A stretch of 57,656 nucleotides of DNA, from positions 1-57,656 of the forward strand of contig NIVC01004154.1 of NCBI GenBank assembly GCA_002269645.1, read 5' to 3'. Below, one piece after another: positions 15,743 through 38,800 of the stretch. Under the pieces are notes generated by a model. It did not search any database. It was not told the DNA's origin and worked only from the letters and a program-made list of their open reading frames with translations. Each line of letters starts with the position of its first letter. Within the stretch, counting starts at the first letter, position 1. Source of the stretch: Macrostomum lignano (taxonomy: Eukaryota). The translations under genes were made by a program, and so were the position numbers.

Positions 15743-18700
15743 TCATACATCAGCGGCGGGTTCCGCGGAGGGTGCAGCGGCGGGGTCGGCGGCGGGGTCG
15801 GCGGCGGGTGCAGCGGCGGGGTCGGCGGAGGGTGCAGCGGCGGGGTCGGCGGCGGGGTCGGCGGCGGGGTCAGCGGAGGGTGCAGCGGCGGGGTCGGCGG
15901 CGGGGTCGGCGGCGGGGTCAGCGGAGGGTGCAGCAGCGGGGTCGGCGGCGGGGTCGGCGGCGGGGTCAGCGGAGGGTGCAGCGGCGGGGTCGGCGGCGGG
16001 GTCAGCGGAGGGTGCAGCGGCGGGGTCGGCGGCGGGGTCAGCGGAGGGTGCAGCGGCGGAATCGGCGGCGGAGGATGCAGTGGCGAGATCGGTAGAGGGT
16101 GCAGCGGCGAGGTCGGCGGAGGGTGCAGCAGCGGGTTCGGCGGAGGGTGCAGCGGCGAGGTAGGAGGAGGGTGCAGCGGCAGGGTCGGAGGAAGGTGCAG
16201 CGGCAGGGTCGGCGGCGGAGGGTGCAGCGGCGAGGTCGGCAGCTCTGACAGGCGCAACCGGTACAACACCAAGTGGGCGGTAGACCTCAGTGAGCATGAG
16301 CAGCACGGTGTCCTCGGAGGCCCAATAGCAGGCGTGGCTAGTCAAAGCGAACAGATAATCGTTGAAAGCCTCAATTGGCGCCTCCTGCAGCACATAGTCC
16401 AACCGACGGCCGCCATTTAAAGCACTGTCACAAGAATCCTCAACTGAACTATCTAAAGAAGAATCCACAGACGCTGCTGAGCTGTCTTCGCTAGGGTCAT
16501 CCTCTTCGGTAGATTGCTGCCGCTGTCGCTGCTGCTGACTATGCGCAGCGGCAAAGCTCTGCAAACCGGACCAGGTGGCTCGCAGGCCGCTCACTAGCCG
16601 ATGCCGCAGCCCGGTGCCAACGCGGGTCAGGCTGTCGCGCAACTGAAGATGCATCCGCTTGCGGCCTTTGTGATGGGGAATCTGCGGGAATAGGTGCCCG
16701 ATATTCGTCCGATTTTATATCGTAAATAAGCGGAGTGTACATTACTGTTACTGTATTGTCTCCCCTCCTATGTCACTCCCCATTTCTCCTATATCACTCT
16801 CCGTCTCTCCAATCTTACTCACGTCTCCCCAATCTCGGTTTCCGTCTCTCCAATCTTACTCTCCGTCTCTCCAATTTCAATCCTGTCTCACCTATCTCAC
16901 TCCAAATCTACTATCTCACTGTCCGTTTCTTCAATCTCACTCTCCGTCTCTCCTATCTCACTCCGAATCTATTATCTCACTTTCCGTCTCTCCAATCTCA
17001 CCCTCCGTCTCTCCGATCTCACGCCCGTCCCTCCAATCTTACTCTCCGTCTCTCCAATTTCAATCCTGTCTCACCTATCTCACTCCAAATCTACTATCTC
17101 ACTGTCCGTTTCTTCAATCTCACTCTCCGTCTCTCCTATCTCACTCTGAATCTATTATCTCACTTTCCGTCTCTCCAATCTCACTCTCCATCTCTTAAAA
17201 TCTCGCTCCCGTCTCTCCGATCTCACTCTCCGTCTTTCCGATCTCACTCTCCGTCTCTCCAATCTTACTCTCCGTCTCTCCAATTTCAATCCTGTCTCAC
17301 CTATCTCACTCCAAATCTACTATCTCACTGTCCGTTTCTTCAATCTCACTCTCAGTCTCTCCTATCTCACTCCGAATCTATTATCTCACTTTCCGTCTCT
17401 TCAATCTCACTCTCCGTCTCTCCAATCTCACCCTCCGTCTCTCCGATCTCACTCCCGTCTCTCCAATCTCACTCTCCGTCTATCCAATCTCACTCTCCGT
17501 CTCTCTAATCTCACTTCCGTCTCTCCTATCTCGCCTCTCCCTTCTCTCGCTCCCGCCCAATTAATAAGCAATAACTGGGGAAAAATCCTACCAAAAATGG
17601 CTCAGCAGGATATCTGGACAGCAGCGGCTCCAACCGATAGGCGATGGGATCAAACGGATGAAAGATGTTGAACAAAGCTGGACGACACGAACCGCTGCAA
17701 CATTCGGGTAGCTGGTATTCGGCGGCCAAAGCTGACACGCCTCTAGACGTGAGAAACAGGGCGATGGGAGAGCCCAGACAGAACAGAGAAGCCGGTGAGA
17801 ACTCCAGCTGGGGATACGAGACACAGGGAAATCCGCTACCTTCACTGTGTTGACTTTCCGTATTCTCGCCAATGCCCGCTACCTGACCAATGACATACGT
17901 TAATTGGGGGGGGTTTCACAAACTCGAAATTTCACAACGTCGAAAGCACCTTCTTTCACAAGGTCGAAATTTCGCAAGGTCGAAATTTCATAACATCGAA
18001 AACTCAAATAGCAGCCACTTTCACAAGGTCGAAACTTCACAAGGTCGAAATTTCACAACATCGAAAGCTTTAGCAAAGGACTTCATAAGGTCGAAATTTC
18101 ACAAGGTCGAAATTTCACAACGTAGAAAAGTTAAACAGCAGCCACTTTCACAAGGTCGAAACTTCACAAGGTCGAAACCTCACAACATCGAAAATTTTAG
18201 CAAGAGACTTCATAAGGTCGAAATTTCATAAGGTCGAAATTTCACAACGTAGAAAACTACTGTATGGTTCTTGATATATAAAATTTTCGACTTTGTGAAA
18301 TTTCGAGCTTATGAAGTTTCGACCTTGTGAAAGTGGCTGCACTTGAGTTTTCGATGTTATGAAATTTCGACCTTGTGAAATTTCGACCTTATGAAATCTC
18401 TTGCTAGATTTTTCGATGTTGTGAAATTCCGACCTTGTGAAGTTTCGACCTTGTGAAAGTGGCTGCTATTTGAGTTTTCGATGTTATGAAATTTCGACCT
18501 TATGAAGCCTCTTGCTAAAGTTTTCGATGTTGTGAAATTTCGACCTTGTGAAGTTTCGACCTTGTGAAATAATTTACTTTTCGACGTTGTGAAATTTCGA
18601 CCTTGTGAAAGCACCCCCGTTAATTGTTTTACTGGCTTTGAAGCCGGAGGCGGAGTCGACTCTCGCTGCTGTTCATCTGGAATCTGGACTTTGGCCTTTG

Positions 18701-21700
18701 ACTTGGTTGCCGACGATTTTGCAATTGCAGCCAGCAGCTTCTTGCGGGGTCCGAGGGGGATGCCGAGTTCCTGAATGATTTAGGTAAGTAGGGCACAGGA
18801 AACAGCAACCAGTAAACTGATTACACATGTAGAAGACAGTCCCCAGTGTAGAACAAAAAGCAAGCAACAACATACCTTGAGTTCGGCATCTGTCAGACTA
18901 GTGAGCACATCAACACTGTCAACTCCAGCAGTTTTAAGTTTCTCTCTAACAGTAGCGGATTCGCCTAGACCACACTGCTTCAAGAACGGGTCAATCTCAG
19001 CATCTGCATTGGTGCCGCTGTCTGCTTTGACATCGGACAGCAAAGGAACCGCTGTGACAACCGCGCTACTAGCCGGCGCAACAAGACCCTGATGAGTCAG
19101 AATGTCGAAAGCGATCACCGAGCCAAGCGAGTGGCCAATCAACGAGAAGCTGCCTTTGTAGTCGGGATTTCGGGTTAGAAACAGTTGACGGAGACGGTTC
19201 ATCTGGGGAGAATTGAGGGGGGGTGGGGACTAAGGGATGTAGATGTCGGTCAATGGGGATCAGAGGGATTTCAAAGTTGGTCAATGAATAAGAGCAGATG
19301 TCGAAGTCGGTCAATGGGGATCACACAAGGCCGGGATGTCGAAGTCGGTCAATGGGGATCACGCAAGGGACGTCGAAGTCGGTCAATGGGATCACACAAG
19401 GCAGGGATGTCGAAGTCGGTCAATCGGGATCACACAAGGGATGTCGAAGTCGGTCAATGGGATCACACAAGGCAGGGATGTCGAAGTCGGTCAATCGGGA
19501 TCACACAAGGGATGTCGAAGTCGGTCAATCGGGATCACACAAGGCAGGGATGTCGAAGTCGGTCAATCGGGATCACACAAGGGATGTCGAAGTCGGTCAA
19601 TGGGATCACACAAGGCAGGGATGTCGAAGTCGGTCAATCGGGATCACACAAGGGATGTCGAAGTCGGTCAATGGGATCACACAAGGCAGGGATGTCGAAG
19701 TCGGTCAATCGGGATCACACAAGGGATGTCGAAGTCGGTCAATCGGGATCACACAAGGCAGGGATGTCGAAGTCGGTCAATCGGGATCACACAAGGTCGG
19801 GATGTCGAATTCGGTCAATCGGGATCAGCAAGGGATGTCGAAGTCGGTCAATGGGATCACACAAGGCAGGGATGTCGAAGTCGGTCAATCGGGATCACAC
19901 AAGGGATGTCGAAGTCGGTCAATCGGGATCACACAAGGCAGGGATGTCGAAGTCGGTCAATCGGGATCACACAAGGGATGTCGAAGTCGGTCAATGGGAT
20001 CACACAAGGCAGGGATGTCGAAGTCGGTCAATCGGGATCACACAAGGGATGTCGAAGTCGGTCAATGGGATCACACAAGGCAGGGATGTCGAAGTCGGTC
20101 AATCGGGATCACACAAGGGATGTCGAAGTCGGTCAATCGGGATCACACAAGGCAGGGATGTCGAAGTCGGTCAATCGGGATCACACAAGGGATGTCGAAG
20201 TCGGTCAATGGGATCACACAAGGCAGGGATGTCGAAGTCGGTCAATCGGGATCACACAAGGGATGTCGAAGTCGGTCAATCGGGATCACACAAGGCAGGG
20301 ATGTCGAAGTCGGTCAATCGGGATCACACAAGGTCGGGATGTCGAATTCGGTCAATCGGGATCAGCAAGGGATGTCGAAGTCGGTCAATGGGGATCAGCA
20401 AGGGATGCCGTTATGAGTCAATAGAGATCAGGAGATATCGACGACTCAACATCATTTAATGAGGGTCTTAAATAAAGACCTGTCTATGCAAATGAGGAAC
20501 TTTAGATACTCGTGATAGCGCACCTCTTTCCCAACAGTGTCCACAATAGTTTGCATGTACCTCGGACTGCTGTAGAACAGCACATCCGTGAGGGTGTCAT
20601 TAGCAAACCGACGCAATTTCGGTATAGACTGCAGACTGATCCGCTGCAGCTGAGCATCCAGCCCCGTAGTGTGATTGCTGTGCAGAGCCGAATGCCAGTG
20701 CACTGGCAGAAACTCAACCCGGCCAAACTGATTAGCGAAATGCGAGCGCATTAATTCACCAGAAACGAAGCGCATTCGGTCAACACACTGGACCAGATTG
20801 TGCCCGAGTAGGTCGTACACAGAGCCGATACCGTGCACTACGAATAGCACGTGATCTACCGGGTTCCGGGACTCCGAGTCCGGAGGCAGAGTGCCGGGGA
20901 ACTGGCCCATGCCTCTGCGGAAGTTTTCAGGTAATATTGGGAACGAATTTATTGCGTAATTACCCAACCTGTCGTTCTGGGTGTCCAATGTCATTCTGAG
21001 TGTGTAACCTGACATTCTGAGTGTGTAACCTGTCATTCTGAGTGTCCAACCTGTCATTCTGTGTGTAACCTGTCATTCTGAGTGTGTAACCTGTCATTCT
21101 TAGTGTCCAACCTGTCATTCTGAGTGTGTAACCTGTCATTCTGAGTGTGTAACCCGTCATTCTGAGTGTGTAACCTGTCATTCTGAGTGTCCAACCTGTC
21201 ATTCTTAGTGTCCAACCTGTCATTCTGAGTGTGTAACCTGACATTCTGAGTGTGTAACCTGACATTCTGAGTGTGTAACCTGTCATTCTGAGTGTGTAAC
21301 CTGACATTCTGAGTGTGTAACCTGTCATTCTGAGTGTCCAACCTGTCATTCTGAGTGTGTAACCTGTCATTCTGAGTGTGTAACCTGTCATTCTGAGTGT
21401 GTAACCTGACCATTCTGAGTGTGTAACCTGTCATTCTGAGTGTGTAACCTGTCATTCTGAGTGTGTAACCTGTCATTCTGAGTGTGTAACCTGTCATTCT
21501 GAGTGTGTAACCTGTCATTCTGAGTGTGTAACCTGTCCTTCTGAGTGTCCAACCTGTCATTCTGAGTGTGTAACCTGACCATTCTGAGTGTGTAACCTGT
21601 CATTCTGAGTGTCCAACCTGTCATTCTGAGTGTGTAACCTGTCATTCTGAGTGTCCAACCTGTCATTCTGAGTGTGTAACCTGTCATTCTGAGTGTGTAA

Positions 21701-22983
21701 CCTGTCATTCTGAGTGTGTAACCTGACCATTCTGAGTGTGTAACCTGTCATTCTTAGTGTCCAACCTGTCATTCTGAGTGTGTAACCTGTCATTCTGAGT
21801 GTGTAACCTGACCATTCTGAGTGTGTAACCTGTCCTTCTGAGTGTCCAACCTGTCATTCTGAGTGTGTAACCTGTCATTCTGAGTGTGTAACCTGTCATT
21901 CTGAGTCTGTAACCTGTCATTCTGAGTGTGTAACCTGACATTCTGAGTGTCCAACCTGTCATTCTGACTCCTGAGCGTCAAACCTGTGCTGTGATCTTAT
22001 GTCTCCGCATCCACGAATTTGTCTGCCTGTTTTTTTCAGTGTCTTTAGATCTGTCTGTCTCCCCGAGCGTCCTGCCAGCCTGTCTGCACGAACCTGTACA
22101 CCACCCGGGGCAATCCGCCGCCAGAAGCGACGCCGCTAGCACCAGCCGATCCGTGCTCGCTGTCATCACTAAACTGCATCAGAGCGTTCGGACTGTGGAA
22201 CACAAACTTTGTACCGTCAGTTTCGACGCCATCTAAACGGAAATATTTACGCCAGGCGTTATTTAACACAGCGTCTCGATAGTGCGTCTCCAGGCTGTCG
22301 CTACTGGCCTCATCGAACGGGATAAATGTTGTATCAGCATCCTCGCCATCGGGCCGGTAAAACCAGGTGCACCGACGGATCTGCATTAACGAACTTTCAG
22401 CATTGCCTACTTCTTCGTCGCCCCAGTAGACTGGGCGCATGTACCGGCCGGACAAATTGGCGTCGAATCTGATTGACATAAAAATAAGTAAAAAATGCGC
22501 GTTGCACTACTTTTAGTAAAATTGATTGCATTAGTAAGTCAATATCCCGCATAAAAGTGAGACGGAAACCTTTGTTGGTGATAGTGACCGTCAGTTAATA
22601 ATGCGACTGTCAAATAAATGGTCACTCGTGCGACCATAAAAAGATGAGCAAACCACCATTGTGACCCTTGTGTGTTCAGGTTGATTTAAGAAATGCAAGA
22701 ACTTGACAGTCACATTGGAGGGTCACAAATCGATCAGTGTCAAAATTTGACCGTCTCAATATTTTGCGGGCATGATTTACCAAGTAAGTTTTACTAACCT
22801 GCCTCCATTCACGGCAACAATATTAGCTGTCTGAGCAGTTGCCGCCTCCTCAAGCTGACAGGAGTCGTACAGAGAGAATGGCAGCCAAACACGCAGGCTG
22901 GCATCGACGCGATGCTGGTGAAACCAGTGGGGCTCTACTGGCTGGTACATTGACTGGCTAGGCGACATAGGGTTAGATGCCAT
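15743..22983 (-). CDS. DDHD2: DDHD2/SEC23IP-family intracellular phospholipase A1 (WWE-like, lipase, SAM, DDHD domains)
   Basis: complement(join(15743..16681,17592..17882,18633..18770,18876..19202,20524..20914,22094..22468,22799..22983)); the exon 5 donor is uncertain because of the TE. Motifs EPHWF, GGR|FD...[46 protein letters not shown], lipase GHSLG, SAM LTDAELK|[64 protein letters not shown]2 versus SEC23IP orthology cannot be resolved by eye. Confidence 0.9.
15750..16245 (-). repeat. Coding GC-rich minisatellite encoding ([11 protein letters not shown])n at the DDHD protein C-terminus
   Basis: 12/21/33-bp units, in frame after the DDHD domain, up to TGA at 15743. Confidence 0.8.
16760..17530. 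repeat. 21-bp minisatellite (ctcactctccgtctctccaat) with ~180-230 bp higher-order blocks in DDHD intron 6
   Basis: Block ctccaatttcaatcctgtctcacctatctcactccaaatctac recurs near 16870, 17053 and 17279. Confidence 0.9.
17907..18617. mobile_element. Non-autonomous foldback (Mutator-like) DNA transposon, 711 bp, 9-bp TSD
   Basis: TSD cgttaattg at 17898-17906 and 18618-18626. Termini gggggggtttcacaa and ttgtgaaagcacccc. Left arm is tandem tttcacaaggtcgaaa, right arm is its reverse complement tttcgaccttgtgaaa, with a short unique centre near 18250-18285. Confidence 0.88.
19240..20410. repeat. 33/38-bp minisatellite (gggatgtcgaagtcggtcaatcgggatcacacaa[ggca]) in DDHD intron 3
   Basis: About 30 units; a variant marker recurs at 19796 and 20333. 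Confidence 0.95.
20960..21965. repeat. 21-bp minisatellite (aacctgtcattctgagtgtgt) in DDHD intron 2
   Basis: About 47 units. Confidence 0.95.
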
Positions 22984-35820: not shown

Positions 35821-38800
35821 ATGCAGCCAAACCCGGTCCGCTTAAGGCCCGGAGACCGATGCACCTGCTGCCCGAACGGCTACCACGTGGACAGAAGTTA
35901 TCTGGACGCTGTTGGCGCGACCAGCAACTACTCGATGGAGAGCTCCAGATCGGCTTATCAACGATCTACAACTACAATGCAGAATGGATCTGTGCTGTCT
36001 TCCTATGAGCAGCAACAGCAGAGAAGCAGCGCTTATTACAGCGACGCCGGCAGCAGCAGGCGGCCTCCCGGCAGTGCCAGCGGCGCCAGCTACAACGGCG
36101 AGCCAGGTATTAATCCGGACGATGAGGGCGACTTTTTTGCCACCTACGGCACTAAGCTGGACAGGCGAACGGTGCGTCGGGATTTAGAGGCCGACGAGAA
36201 TCGGCAACGTGATGAGGAGGAGGCCAAACGACGTCAGCAGGAGGCCCAGCGGGAGCAGGAGCGAGAGCGGCGGCGGCAGGAGCGGCGCCGGCGAAAGCAG
36301 CAACAGCAGCAGCAGCAGCTGGAGGAGAAGCAGCCGTCGCCCAGGCGACTGTCGCCTATGCCAGAGAGCTCACCGCCTAAGGTGTCTAGAAGGGCACCGC
36401 CTCCGCCTCCTCCACCGCCGCCGCCGCCCCAGCCGCCTAGGCCGAATCGGCGGCTAAACGAGCTTGAGAAGCTGCTGCCGCATCTGGAGGAGCAGTTCAA
36501 AAGCCTGCGGGACGCGGAGCCGCCAGCAGAAGCCACTCCACCGCAGAAGCCTCGCCGAGAAACAAAAACTTCGACAGCGCAGACGGATCCGGACAGCCCG
36601 CCGCCGACACCGCTACCGACTGTCAGCAAATCCACCGAGACTGAGCGACCGCCTGTGGCGGGCTATCGAACCCAGTCTACTGGCACCGACGATTTTAGTC
36701 GGTCGGCCTCGGTCAAGGCCGCCGCCGCTGCCGACGAGTCCGACGGCGAACCGGTGCAAAAGAAGCCGGCAGTAGCGGCTAAACAGCCGCCGCCAGCTGT
36801 GCCGCCGAAACCGGCTGTGAAGAAGCGTCCGCTACCTCTGTTGAGCGCGTGCGTTGGAACTGACCCGCTGCCGCCGCCGCCGCCGCCGCCGCCTCCACCA
36901 CCGCAGTCAGATGCCAGCGTCATCACCGATCCGCTTCCGCCACCTCCTCCCCTGACCGACTCCAGCGTTGTCACCGACCCTTTGTTGCCTCCGCCGCCTC
37001 AGTCCGACGCCAGCGTGTCCACCGATGCGCCGCCTCAGCTTGTGCACTTCGGCCAGCAGATCTCCGCTTCAGACGATCCGGCCGAGGTGCTTGAAGATTC
37101 CATTCCGGCGCCGCCTGCGCCGCTTGCCGAATTGGCGCCGCCGCCTGCCCGTGTGCCACCGTCCGAGGCCGGCCTGCCGCCCATTCTTGACGATCCGCGA
37201 GTTCAGGACGATGACGACAATAACAATGGTTGCGAGTGCATCGAGGAGACGATCATACCGGAGCGGGCTAACGTCGTGGAGACGGGCACCAGCACCACCT
37301 TCAGCTGGATGTTTCCCTCGCAGGCGACGAGTACAGACGACTTGCCGCAGCCTCCGCTGCCCGAACCGCCGGCGCATTCAAAGCCGGAGAGCAGCGACTT
37401 TGAGCAGCAGTTCAGTCCGCCGCCGCCGCCGCCCTCCAGTTCAACAGACACGGCCGTTTCCACTGTCCGCGTGCTTACCAACTGCAGCGACACTCAGACG
37501 GACCCGCTGCCCTCGCCGCCAACTCCGCCGTCGCCGCCACCGACGCCGTCTCCATCGCCAGCTCCGGTCGTGTCAGTCGGTGTCGGCGATTTCGACGTTT
37601 GCGACGTTGAAATGGCGACAAAATCGTGCGGCACAGACGGAGGCCCCGCCGCCCCGATGGTGACGTCGAATGTCGAATGTCGGATGCTGAAGTTAGTCGA
37701 CGTTGGGTCGGAATTCTCCTTGCACACGCATGCAACCTCGGCTCGCGACTCCGGTTCGTTCCATCGGCAGGAGGCGGAGGCGACCTCTGCAACTACGATG
37801 TCGGCCAGCTATCGTCAGAAGCATGAAGAGAAGCAACAGATTCTGCAACAGAGGCAGCAATTAGAGCAAGCTTATCAGCAGAAACTGCAGCTAATCGAAC
37901 GCGAGCATGTTAGCACAGTGAATCATCTCAGGTCAGTGATAACAGAACTGGAGAGACAGGTGAGCACGTATCAGTCAACTGTAGTTGAGCTGAAGCAGCA
38001 GCAGTCGGCAGCATCAAAGTCAATCCGCAGGCGCAATGTTGGCCTAATTGTGAAACCATCCTGTCGCGATGTCGGCATCAATTTTGTCGCCGAGGAGGCC
38101 AAACCGTCTCAACGTTCCGTCGGTATCGGCGTCGAACTCCAGCCGCCGGCGGCCAGCAGCAGCAGTAGCAGCAGGATTGAAGAATCGACCAGATCATCCA
38201 CAACTAGAAGCGAAAGTTCTCTGCTCAACTCGGTTCAGCAGTCGTCCACAGAAGTGGTGGCTCCCGCGCCTACGCCGCCGCCAGTCACGTCCACAACCAT
38301 AATTAGCCAGAGGCACGCCGCTCAGACCATCATCCAACAGTTGCACCAGACCTACGGTATTAGCACTGTTGAGCTTGTCAATCTTATTAGTCAGCTCCTA
38401 CGACGCGACGTTAGAAGCTGCGGACTACAGGTTAGGGTGCAATGTTTGTTATTGTTGTAGACCTAGTTTATGTTGATAGCCGCTTTACTAAACTGTCTTG
38501 TCTGTCAGGTACGCTCTCTGTCAGCTGTAGGTCAGCCTGTAGTTGTCTGTCAATCTGTAACTGTCTGTCAGATAGGCCAACAGTCAGTCTGTAATTGTCT
38601 GTCAGATGGGCCAACAGTCAGTCTGTAATTGTCTGTCAGTTAGTCCAACAGGCAGTCTGTAATTGTCAGATGGGCCAACAGTCAGTCTGTAATTGTCTGT
38701 CAGTTAGGCCAACAGTCAGTCTGTAATTGTCTGTCAGTTAGGCCAACAGTCAGTCTGTAATTGTCTGTCAGATGGGCCAACAGTCAGTCTGTAATTGTCT

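Follow-up and report, generated by a model that had tools for sequence, protein, structure and literature searches.

When a transposon lands in a coding exon and is then annotated as an intron, has a new intron been born, or has a gene been broken? This question is raised by a gene on contig NIVC01004154.1 of the flatworm Macrostomum lignano (assembly Mlig_3_7, GCA_002269645.1), of which a stretch of 57,656 nt, here called the window, was analysed. A foldback-type DNA transposon interrupts the fifth coding exon of a DDHD2/SEC23IP-like phospholipase gene in this window, and a preliminary description of the sequence read it as an introner-like intron gain in progress, or else as a null allele. 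We favor, at a probability of roughly 0.55, a young insertion allele that is probably non-functional and that is buffered by two intact paralogues and probably by an empty allele, with the annotated "introns" at this position being products of the annotation methods.

The insertion itself is clean. The element is flanked by a perfect 9-bp target-site duplication (TSD), CGTTAATTG on the forward strand and CAATTAACG in gene sense, whose two copies agree at 9/9 positions with a spacing of 720 nt (Table 1). This duplication is not extendable on either side because the outside bases differ, and the chance of a 9-mer match at one fixed register is about 4e-6. Both termini are G-runs, GGGGTGC... and GGGGGGGTTTCAC..., and both arms (350 and 334 bp) are built from a 16-bp subrepeat, TTTCACAAGGTCGAAA, arranged in 65/127-bp higher-order units. 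The arms are 89-96% complementary to each other and surround a loop of 27 nt. A two-subrepeat probe produced 21 matches in the window, every one of them within the element, with 0 expected by chance. The predicted RNA fold of the element and its flanks reached -454.6 kcal/mol, compared to -180 ± 6 for shuffled sequences (z = -43.5), and would bring both TSD copies together at the base of a ~340-bp stem, with the flanks adjacent to each other. The 711-bp foldback structure with GG-starting termini and a perfect 9-bp TSD, as given in the preliminary description, was therefore recovered in full.

On structural grounds, the element is a foldback-type DNA transposon with a 9-bp TSD. Like the Foldback and Mutator-like foldback elements, such as Drosophila FB and Tm1 of root-knot nematodes (PMC3169594), it combines long composite inverted arms of short tandem subrepeats with nearly no unique middle, a non-coding make-up resembling that of copies of miniature inverted-repeat transposable elements, and a 9-bp target duplication without an evident target consensus. 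It differs from FB and Tm1 in that no cognate transposase or second copy was seen here, and the likeness is one of structure rather than sequence similarity to a described family. A 9-bp target duplication is also compatible with Merlin elements, which leaves more than one candidate superfamily. The element has no Pfam match, no protein homologue and no open reading frame (ORF) for a transposase. A Pfam scan of 10 window ORFs returned PUF and WWE matches only, with transposase absent from those ORFs. Searching for the subrepeat revealed no second copy of the element in the window or in ~49 kb of other M. lignano sequence, and an exact scan of metagenome and prokaryote genome collections with the two-subrepeat probe gave 0 matches. 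The 84-aa open frame of the element was also compared with a protein database, where ORF calls on further copies might appear, and returned nothing. A tRNA scan of the window found none.

The host gene has six exons, one of which is cut by the element, making seven pieces; GenBank places the gene at 22983-16025 on this contig. Excising the element and one TSD copy rejoins a single open exon in frame, so that the pieces numbered as exons 5 and 6 were once one exon, as the preliminary description had proposed; the translation and the empty paralogous sites described below both agree with this. The restored gene has the domain order WWE, lipase GxSxG, SAM and DDHD, based on a Pfam WWE_3 match, on DDHD, SAM and WWE domains of homologues, and on the annotated product. 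Its product is 38-42% identical to animal DDHD2/SEC23IP proteins across 95-100% of the length and 97% identical to a UniProt M. lignano paralogue, P0022.

Empty versions of the target site were found in two paralogous contigs of the same assembly, NIVC01000309.1 (L002) and NIVC01002258.1 (L003), which were located via the neighbouring PUF gene. Each carries a DDHD gene with one uninterrupted target, ...GCCAGTAAAACAATTAACCTATGTCATTGGTCAGGTAGCG..., and has the empty site ...CCAGTAAAACAATTAACCTATGTCATTGGTCAGG..., and the paralogue P0022 is likewise continuous at the insertion site. Alignment to 119 orthologues from animals places the insertion within a conserved segment, S-[VI]-x-[VI]-[DE]-[YF]-x-x-[GF], which it splits between T and Y; the aromatic position is Y or F in 119/119 sequences, and the hydrophobic position before it is V or I in 118/119. 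The comparison with orthologues suggested in the preliminary description thus placed a [VI]-[DE]-[YF] motif across the insertion point. It had also suggested looking for an ancestral intron at this position in relatives. No M. lignano copy has an intron there, and in the starfish orthologue, the only one checked, the closest intron interrupts the G codon of GVGQ (at about window position 17840), 58 nt downstream of the insertion. An intron at this starfish position is absent from all three M. lignano copies. Because two paralogous loci are empty and 119 orthologues conserve the motif that is split, the insertion is recent, specific to this copy and not located in an old intron.

The three DDHD copies are paralogues and not alleles, and the insertion postdates the divergence of the gene copies. 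Identity between the window and L002 was 99.5-100% in exons 1-3, ~94% in exons 4-5, and 98-99% in exons 6-7. Exon divergence from the closest paralogue is ~1.9% overall and 5-6% in exons 4-5. Variants in exons 4-6, including 8 differences in exon 5, distinguish the window copy, as does its target site, which reads ACG instead of ACC. The assembly as a whole holds 180 Mb in duplicated blocks that are at least 95% identical, and line DV1 has extra large chromosomes.

Several further observations concern these copies. Divergence is mosaic when window positions 15743-22983 are compared with L002 1811-7314 and L003 898-7039, and in exons 4-5 both L002 and L003 are only ~94% identical to the window, with the same mismatch counts (16 and 8 for the two exons). 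This sequence pattern suggests gene conversion or recombination between homeologues. The DDHD copy at L002 1811-7314 appears intact and matches UniProt A0A1I8H412 (the QHNEGSGF variant), yet GenBank calls no gene there while annotating the transposon-bearing copy. At 17833-17884, 13 extra flatworm residues occur inside the conserved motif and are carried by 0/119 other orthologues. This segment ends exactly at the phase-1 intron position of the starfish gene and is flanked by a 9-bp direct repeat, AGGTAGCGG, with a spacing of 43 nt; it could have arisen as a small tandem duplication or might mark where an intron was lost.

For splicing of the element in frame, the candidate donors are poor matches to those of the surrounding introns. 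The real donors of the host gene read CAG/GTTAGT, CAG/GTTCGT, GAG/GTGCGC, AAG/GTATGT and TTG/GTAGGA (the slash marks the splice junction), and those of the neighbouring PUF gene AG/GTGGGT, CG/GTGAGG and CA/GTGAGT, with a G at +5 in 8/8 and a G at -1 in 7/8. All 8 other introns reconstructed at the locus, a small sample, are GT-AG, and the acceptors read in the host gene are CAG in 5/5 cases. The preliminary description had proposed a donor CCA/GTAAAA (18632) and an acceptor GGTCAG/GTA (17883), both host exon sequence, which together would remove the element in frame at the cost of 10 codons, as well as an element-internal donor, GGG/GTGCTT, in phase 0. These sites were all found, the last at 18614, from which an in-frame intron to 17883 would measure 732 nt. 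CCA/GTAAAA lacks a G at both +5 and -1, and GGG/GTGCTT lacks one at +5. There was no better in-frame donor in exon 5 or in the first arm. The acceptor is plausible, being a CAG and the first AG past the C-run of the element. In terms of the protein, the 750-nt option would remove the entire S-[VI]-x-[VI]-[DE]-[YF]-x-x-[GF] segment, while the 732-nt option would swap YVIGQ for G and lose the invariant aromatic residue.

Exact removal of 720 nt fares no better by the usual rules. The deletion can be placed in 10 registers (CA..CC, AA..CC, AT..CA, TT..AA, TA..AT, AA..TT, AC..TA, CG..AA, GG..AC and GG..CG), of which 0/10 are canonical GT-AG, and the TSD CAATTAACG holds neither GT nor AG. A hidden short intron upstream of the insertion site was considered as well and rejected, as exon 5 has no usable donor. 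If the element is instead read through, translation meets a stop at 18359-18357, confirming the position of 18357 given in the preliminary description. Since this stop is reached after 86 codons of the element and the last exon junction lies beyond it, nonsense-mediated decay of the transcript is expected.

Two public gene models nevertheless treat the element as an intron, and how each was made bears on what it can tell. The coding sequence of GenBank PAA48415.1, whose product is an exact prefix of the restored translation, skips the element and one TSD copy (720 nt). For the Mlig_3_7 annotation, de novo transcripts were mapped with BLAT at a minimum identity of 0.8, retaining hits within 1% of the best, and were merged with STAR/StringTie transcripts via TACO before ORF calling; no step in this pipeline demanded canonical splice sites (PMC5730564). 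What PAA48415.1 establishes is limited to the placement on this contig of some RNA-derived sequence whose junction is empty. This RNA probably came from the window copy itself, because the closest paralogue differs by ~1.9% in exons, more than the 1% margin from the best hit that the filter allowed. Its possible sources are an empty allele of the same copy, for which the extra copies of the large chromosome in DV1 and the high redundancy of the assembly leave room, a jump of reverse transcriptase between the 9-nt repeats, or genuine exact removal from RNA.

The second model, UniProt A0A1I8II28 (P0143), differs from PAA48415.1 solely in lacking ten residues, corresponding exactly to GT(18632)...AG(17883). 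Models from the older assembly and WormBase ParaSite for M. lignano are MAKER/SNAP predictions, according to gene names quoted in another paper. Because the gene set is of this kind, A0A1I8II28 is probably a prediction as well, in which the gene finder took an in-frame detour round the insert. Both assemblies contain the insertion but use the same PacBio reads and are not independent samples. Neither public model demonstrates splicing of the element.

Based on these data, we propose that, after the gene copies had diverged, a non-autonomous foldback element inserted into one of them by cut-and-paste, generating the 9-bp TSD. M. lignano line DV1 has at least three of these paralogous DDHD2/SEC23IP-like genes, and the one that was hit carries the element in its fifth coding exon. 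Transcription would enter the element, the RNA would form a hairpin of ~340 bp, the frame would end after 86 foreign codons, and the message would be expected to undergo nonsense-mediated decay. For the DNA that carries it, the outcome would likely be a loss-of-function or strongly reduced-function allele. Two intact paralogues, and probably an empty version of the same copy as well, would make the insertion tolerable. Under this proposal, the 720-nt gap in the GenBank model would reflect RNA-derived empty-junction sequence mapped without a splice-site rule, and the 750-nt GT-AG intron in the UniProt model would probably be a MAKER/SNAP workaround that preserves the frame. Three points weigh against it: in-frame GT...AG pairs do exist, with a CAG acceptor like those of the host gene; RNA of this very copy without the element probably exists; and no empty allele of this copy was present in the assembly parts examined.

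The alternative closest to the preliminary description is that the element is a nascent spliceosomal intron, removed by cryptic GT-AG splicing of 750 nt (18632-17883) or 732 nt (18614-17883) to give a shortened, in-frame protein. Both pairs are in phase 0, the acceptor matches the host pattern and is the first AG beyond the poly-C end, the real host donor GAG/GTGCGC resembles GGG/GTGCTT, and the predicted hairpin (-455 kcal/mol) would juxtapose the flanks. That A0A1I8II28 picked exactly the 750-nt pair also fits, although this model comes from a MAKER/SNAP set and is probably a prediction, not a transcript, and the transcript-derived GenBank model uses other boundaries. Considering in addition that neither donor has the +5 G of all 8 local donors, that CCA/GTAAAA also lacks the -1 G, and that either deletion would lose the invariant Y/F, the longer one together with the whole conserved segment, we regard a nascent intron as unlikely. 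More broadly, it is doubtful that RNA of the insertion copy is freed of the element, whether exactly, with the help of the 340-bp stem and 9-nt repeats, or via the weak in-frame GT...AG sites; in its favor, RNA-derived sequence with the exact junction maps best to this copy, as the GenBank model shows. Of the two outcomes named in the preliminary description, intron gain is thus disfavored by the weak donors, the loss of the conserved motif, and gene models that do not show splicing, and the null allele is the likelier reading. A different explanation for the exact 720-nt "intron" is that reverse transcriptase switched template between the TSD copies across the hairpin, with the RNA itself keeping the element. 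A hairpin of ~340 bp directly flanked by 9-nt direct repeats has the geometry for such jumps, template switching with short direct repeats and non-canonical ends is documented (PMC2923612, PMC8240250), and the absence of a canonical register among the 10 would be as predicted. Such an artefact would, however, need abundant, stable RNA containing the element despite its premature stop and long double-stranded stem, and an empty allele is the simpler account; we therefore consider it improbable.

Still less probable is a true non-canonical, repeat-guided removal of the element from RNA, similar to that in the dinoflagellate Amoebophrya (PMC7789003), where direct repeats at the boundaries and a hairpin of terminal inverted repeats occur as they do here. 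The GenBank coding sequence matches exact removal of this kind, but the annotation pipeline would give the same model from an empty allele, and the other 8 introns of the locus are ordinary GT-AG. Repeat-guided non-canonical splicing is not known in flatworms. Two further explanations carry next to no weight. The starfish intron nearby would be consistent with the element having landed in a pre-existing ancestral intron; its position at ~17840 is 58 nt away, all three M. lignano copies are continuous coding sequence at the site, the residues flanking the insertion align to the conserved motif, and without the element the 18632...17883 pair encloses just 30 nt. The empty paralogous sites refute this explanation. 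An assembly artefact, such as a long-read palindrome chimera, might be suspected in an early PacBio contig, especially with both assemblies drawing on the same reads. It was rejected: the inserted sequence bears no relation to the DNA on either side, its inverted termini are defined, and the target, which is single-copy in the paralogues, is perfectly duplicated over 9 bp; judging from A0A1I8II28, two different assemblers also retained the insert.

Comparison with known systems clarifies what kind of case this is. An introner family comprises many similar introns that take their splice signals from the element and/or the duplication (PMC9860276, PMC12130899), and systematic screens have detected transposons that generate introns in just two groups of animals (PMC9860276). 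The M. lignano element shares with them a DNA transposon structure with inverted termini and a TSD, a location within coding sequence, and annotation as an intron. It differs in that a single copy was seen in the sequences searched and in that neither the element nor the TSD gives a usable site for exact removal: the sole in-frame donor borne by the element is weak, and the acceptor is host exon. In a 2022 screen of 3,325 genomes, Macrostomum_lignano was scored marine = 1 and introner = 0. The term "introner-like" used in the preliminary description is unsupported because no second copy was found in the sequences searched; the lack of GT or AG in the TSD and the negative score of the species in the published screen point the same way.

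The Amoebophrya introners (PMC7789003) resemble the GenBank model in that direct repeats overlap their boundaries, a hairpin brings the exon ends together, and their ends are not GT-AG. In that organism more than 60% of the introns are non-canonical and supported by RNA-seq, whereas the neighbouring introns here are all canonical. The arms there are 8-20 nt long compared to ~340 bp here, and the one non-canonical exception at our locus is explicable by the mapping method. In maize Ds and dSpm alleles and in C. elegans Tc1 alleles, exon insertions are removed from mutant pre-mRNA via cryptic splice sites. The window copy shares with these an insertion in a coding exon, in-frame cryptic GT...AG sites near the element ends, and a possible partly functional protein; the spliced products in maize and C. 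elegans were proven by cDNA sequencing, whereas here the evidence is genomic sequence. As for the origin of empty alleles, Drosophila FB elements undergo precise excision at high frequency. In bacteria, the DIRex arrangement of direct and inverted repeats stimulates precise deletion (PMC5576700), and by analogy slippage at a long palindrome between short direct repeats, as found here, could delete the palindrome and one repeat exactly. We offer this analogy solely as a possible source of empty alleles in culture.

Table 1. Positions in the window of the host gene, the element and the candidate splice sites (a slash marks a splice junction).
Feature	Position	Strand	Remarks
Host gene, WWE-lipase(GHSLGS)-SAM-DDHD phospholipase, DDHD2/SEC23IP-like	15743..22983	-	GenBank PAA48415.1 / BOX15_Mlig023831g1
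Exon 1	22983-22799	-	
Exon 2	22468-22094	-	
Exon 3	20914-20524	-	
Exon 4	19202-18876	-	carries GHSLGS
Exons 5 and 6 (one split exon, fifth coding)	18770-18618 and 17897-17592	-	
Upstream half of split exon ("exon 5")	18627..18770	-	SAM end and linker; real acceptor attcag/GAACTC at 18770
Downstream half of split exon ("exon 6")	17592..17897	-	DDHD start; real donor TTG/GTAGGA after 17592
Exon 7	16681-about 15743	-	
TSD copy 1	18618..18626	-	CAATTAACG in gene sense; codons Q-L-T; closes upstream exon half
TSD copy 2	17898..17906	-	CAATTAACG
Foldback-type non-autonomous DNA transposon, 711 bp	17907..18617		termini GGGG... and ...CCCCCCC
Arm A (5' in gene sense)	18284..18617		tandem 16-bp subrepeats, 111/127-bp higher-order units; terminal inverted repeat is the outer 39 nt, 18579-18617
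Central loop, 27 nt, between innermost arm copies	18257..18283		
Arm B (3' in gene sense)	17907..18256		arm A inverted; terminal inverted repeat is the outer 39 nt, 17907-17945
Candidate cryptic donor CCA/GTAAAA	18631..18632	-	host sequence, phase 0; used by UniProt A0A1I8II28
Candidate cryptic donor GGG/GTGCTT	18613..18614	-	element terminus, phase 0
Candidate cryptic acceptor GGTCAG/GTA	17883..17884	-	host sequence, phase 0
Hypothetical 750-nt in-frame GT-AG intron	17883..18632	-	would take out the element and 10 codons
Read-through stop	18357..18359	-	in frame from exon 5, after 86 foreign codons

The end of the last exon of the host gene (15743-16270) is a coding minisatellite of AADPAA/AAAPS repeats, within which the GenBank product, marked partial, terminates and the paralogue model P0022 frameshifts. 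The introns at 17003-17548, 19232-20460 and 20960-21980 are packed with minisatellites, including a 21-nt unit repeated ~26 times, units of 34-38/71 nt, and a 21-nt unit reading MTGYTLR in one frame, and these generate long spurious ORFs on both strands. At the other end, the MAKER-derived models P0022 and P0143 begin with SMYQ..., ten residues past the GenBank start (22955-22983, reverse strand). This start lies directly after CAG in ...CCTAGCCAG/TCAATGTAC, and the CAG could be a trans-splice acceptor, making MYQPVEPHW the true start.

Elsewhere in the window, an 879-codon ORF at 35821-38460 (forward strand; 60-66% G+C) adjoins a 13-kb A+T-rich stretch (23-36 kb, 27-37% G+C). Its product is proline-rich and of low complexity, with a coiled-coil-like C-terminal part, and it has no Pfam match and no recorded gene with exactly this product. 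On the paralogous contigs, a 94-residue gene is annotated antisense over the entire PUF gene (L002 9083-19471; L003 9108-19122, reverse strand), with no Pfam match on record.

The M. lignano locus is relevant to the study of intron origin in two ways. Were the RNA freed of the element, M. lignano would offer a dated example, at a single locus, of a DNA transposon giving rise to an intron in an animal; it would mean that a transposon insertion acts as an intron upon landing, in an animal that is easily cultured and transformable. For this laboratory model, inbred lines, transgenesis and public RNA-seq are already available. On present evidence, the locus represents a clean, recent foldback insertion in a hidden polyploid whose redundant genes buffer it. 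It also serves as a warning, since both public annotations carry the transposon as an "intron", one with impossible splice sites and the other deleting a conserved motif, and annotation-based screens for introners could be misled by such cases.

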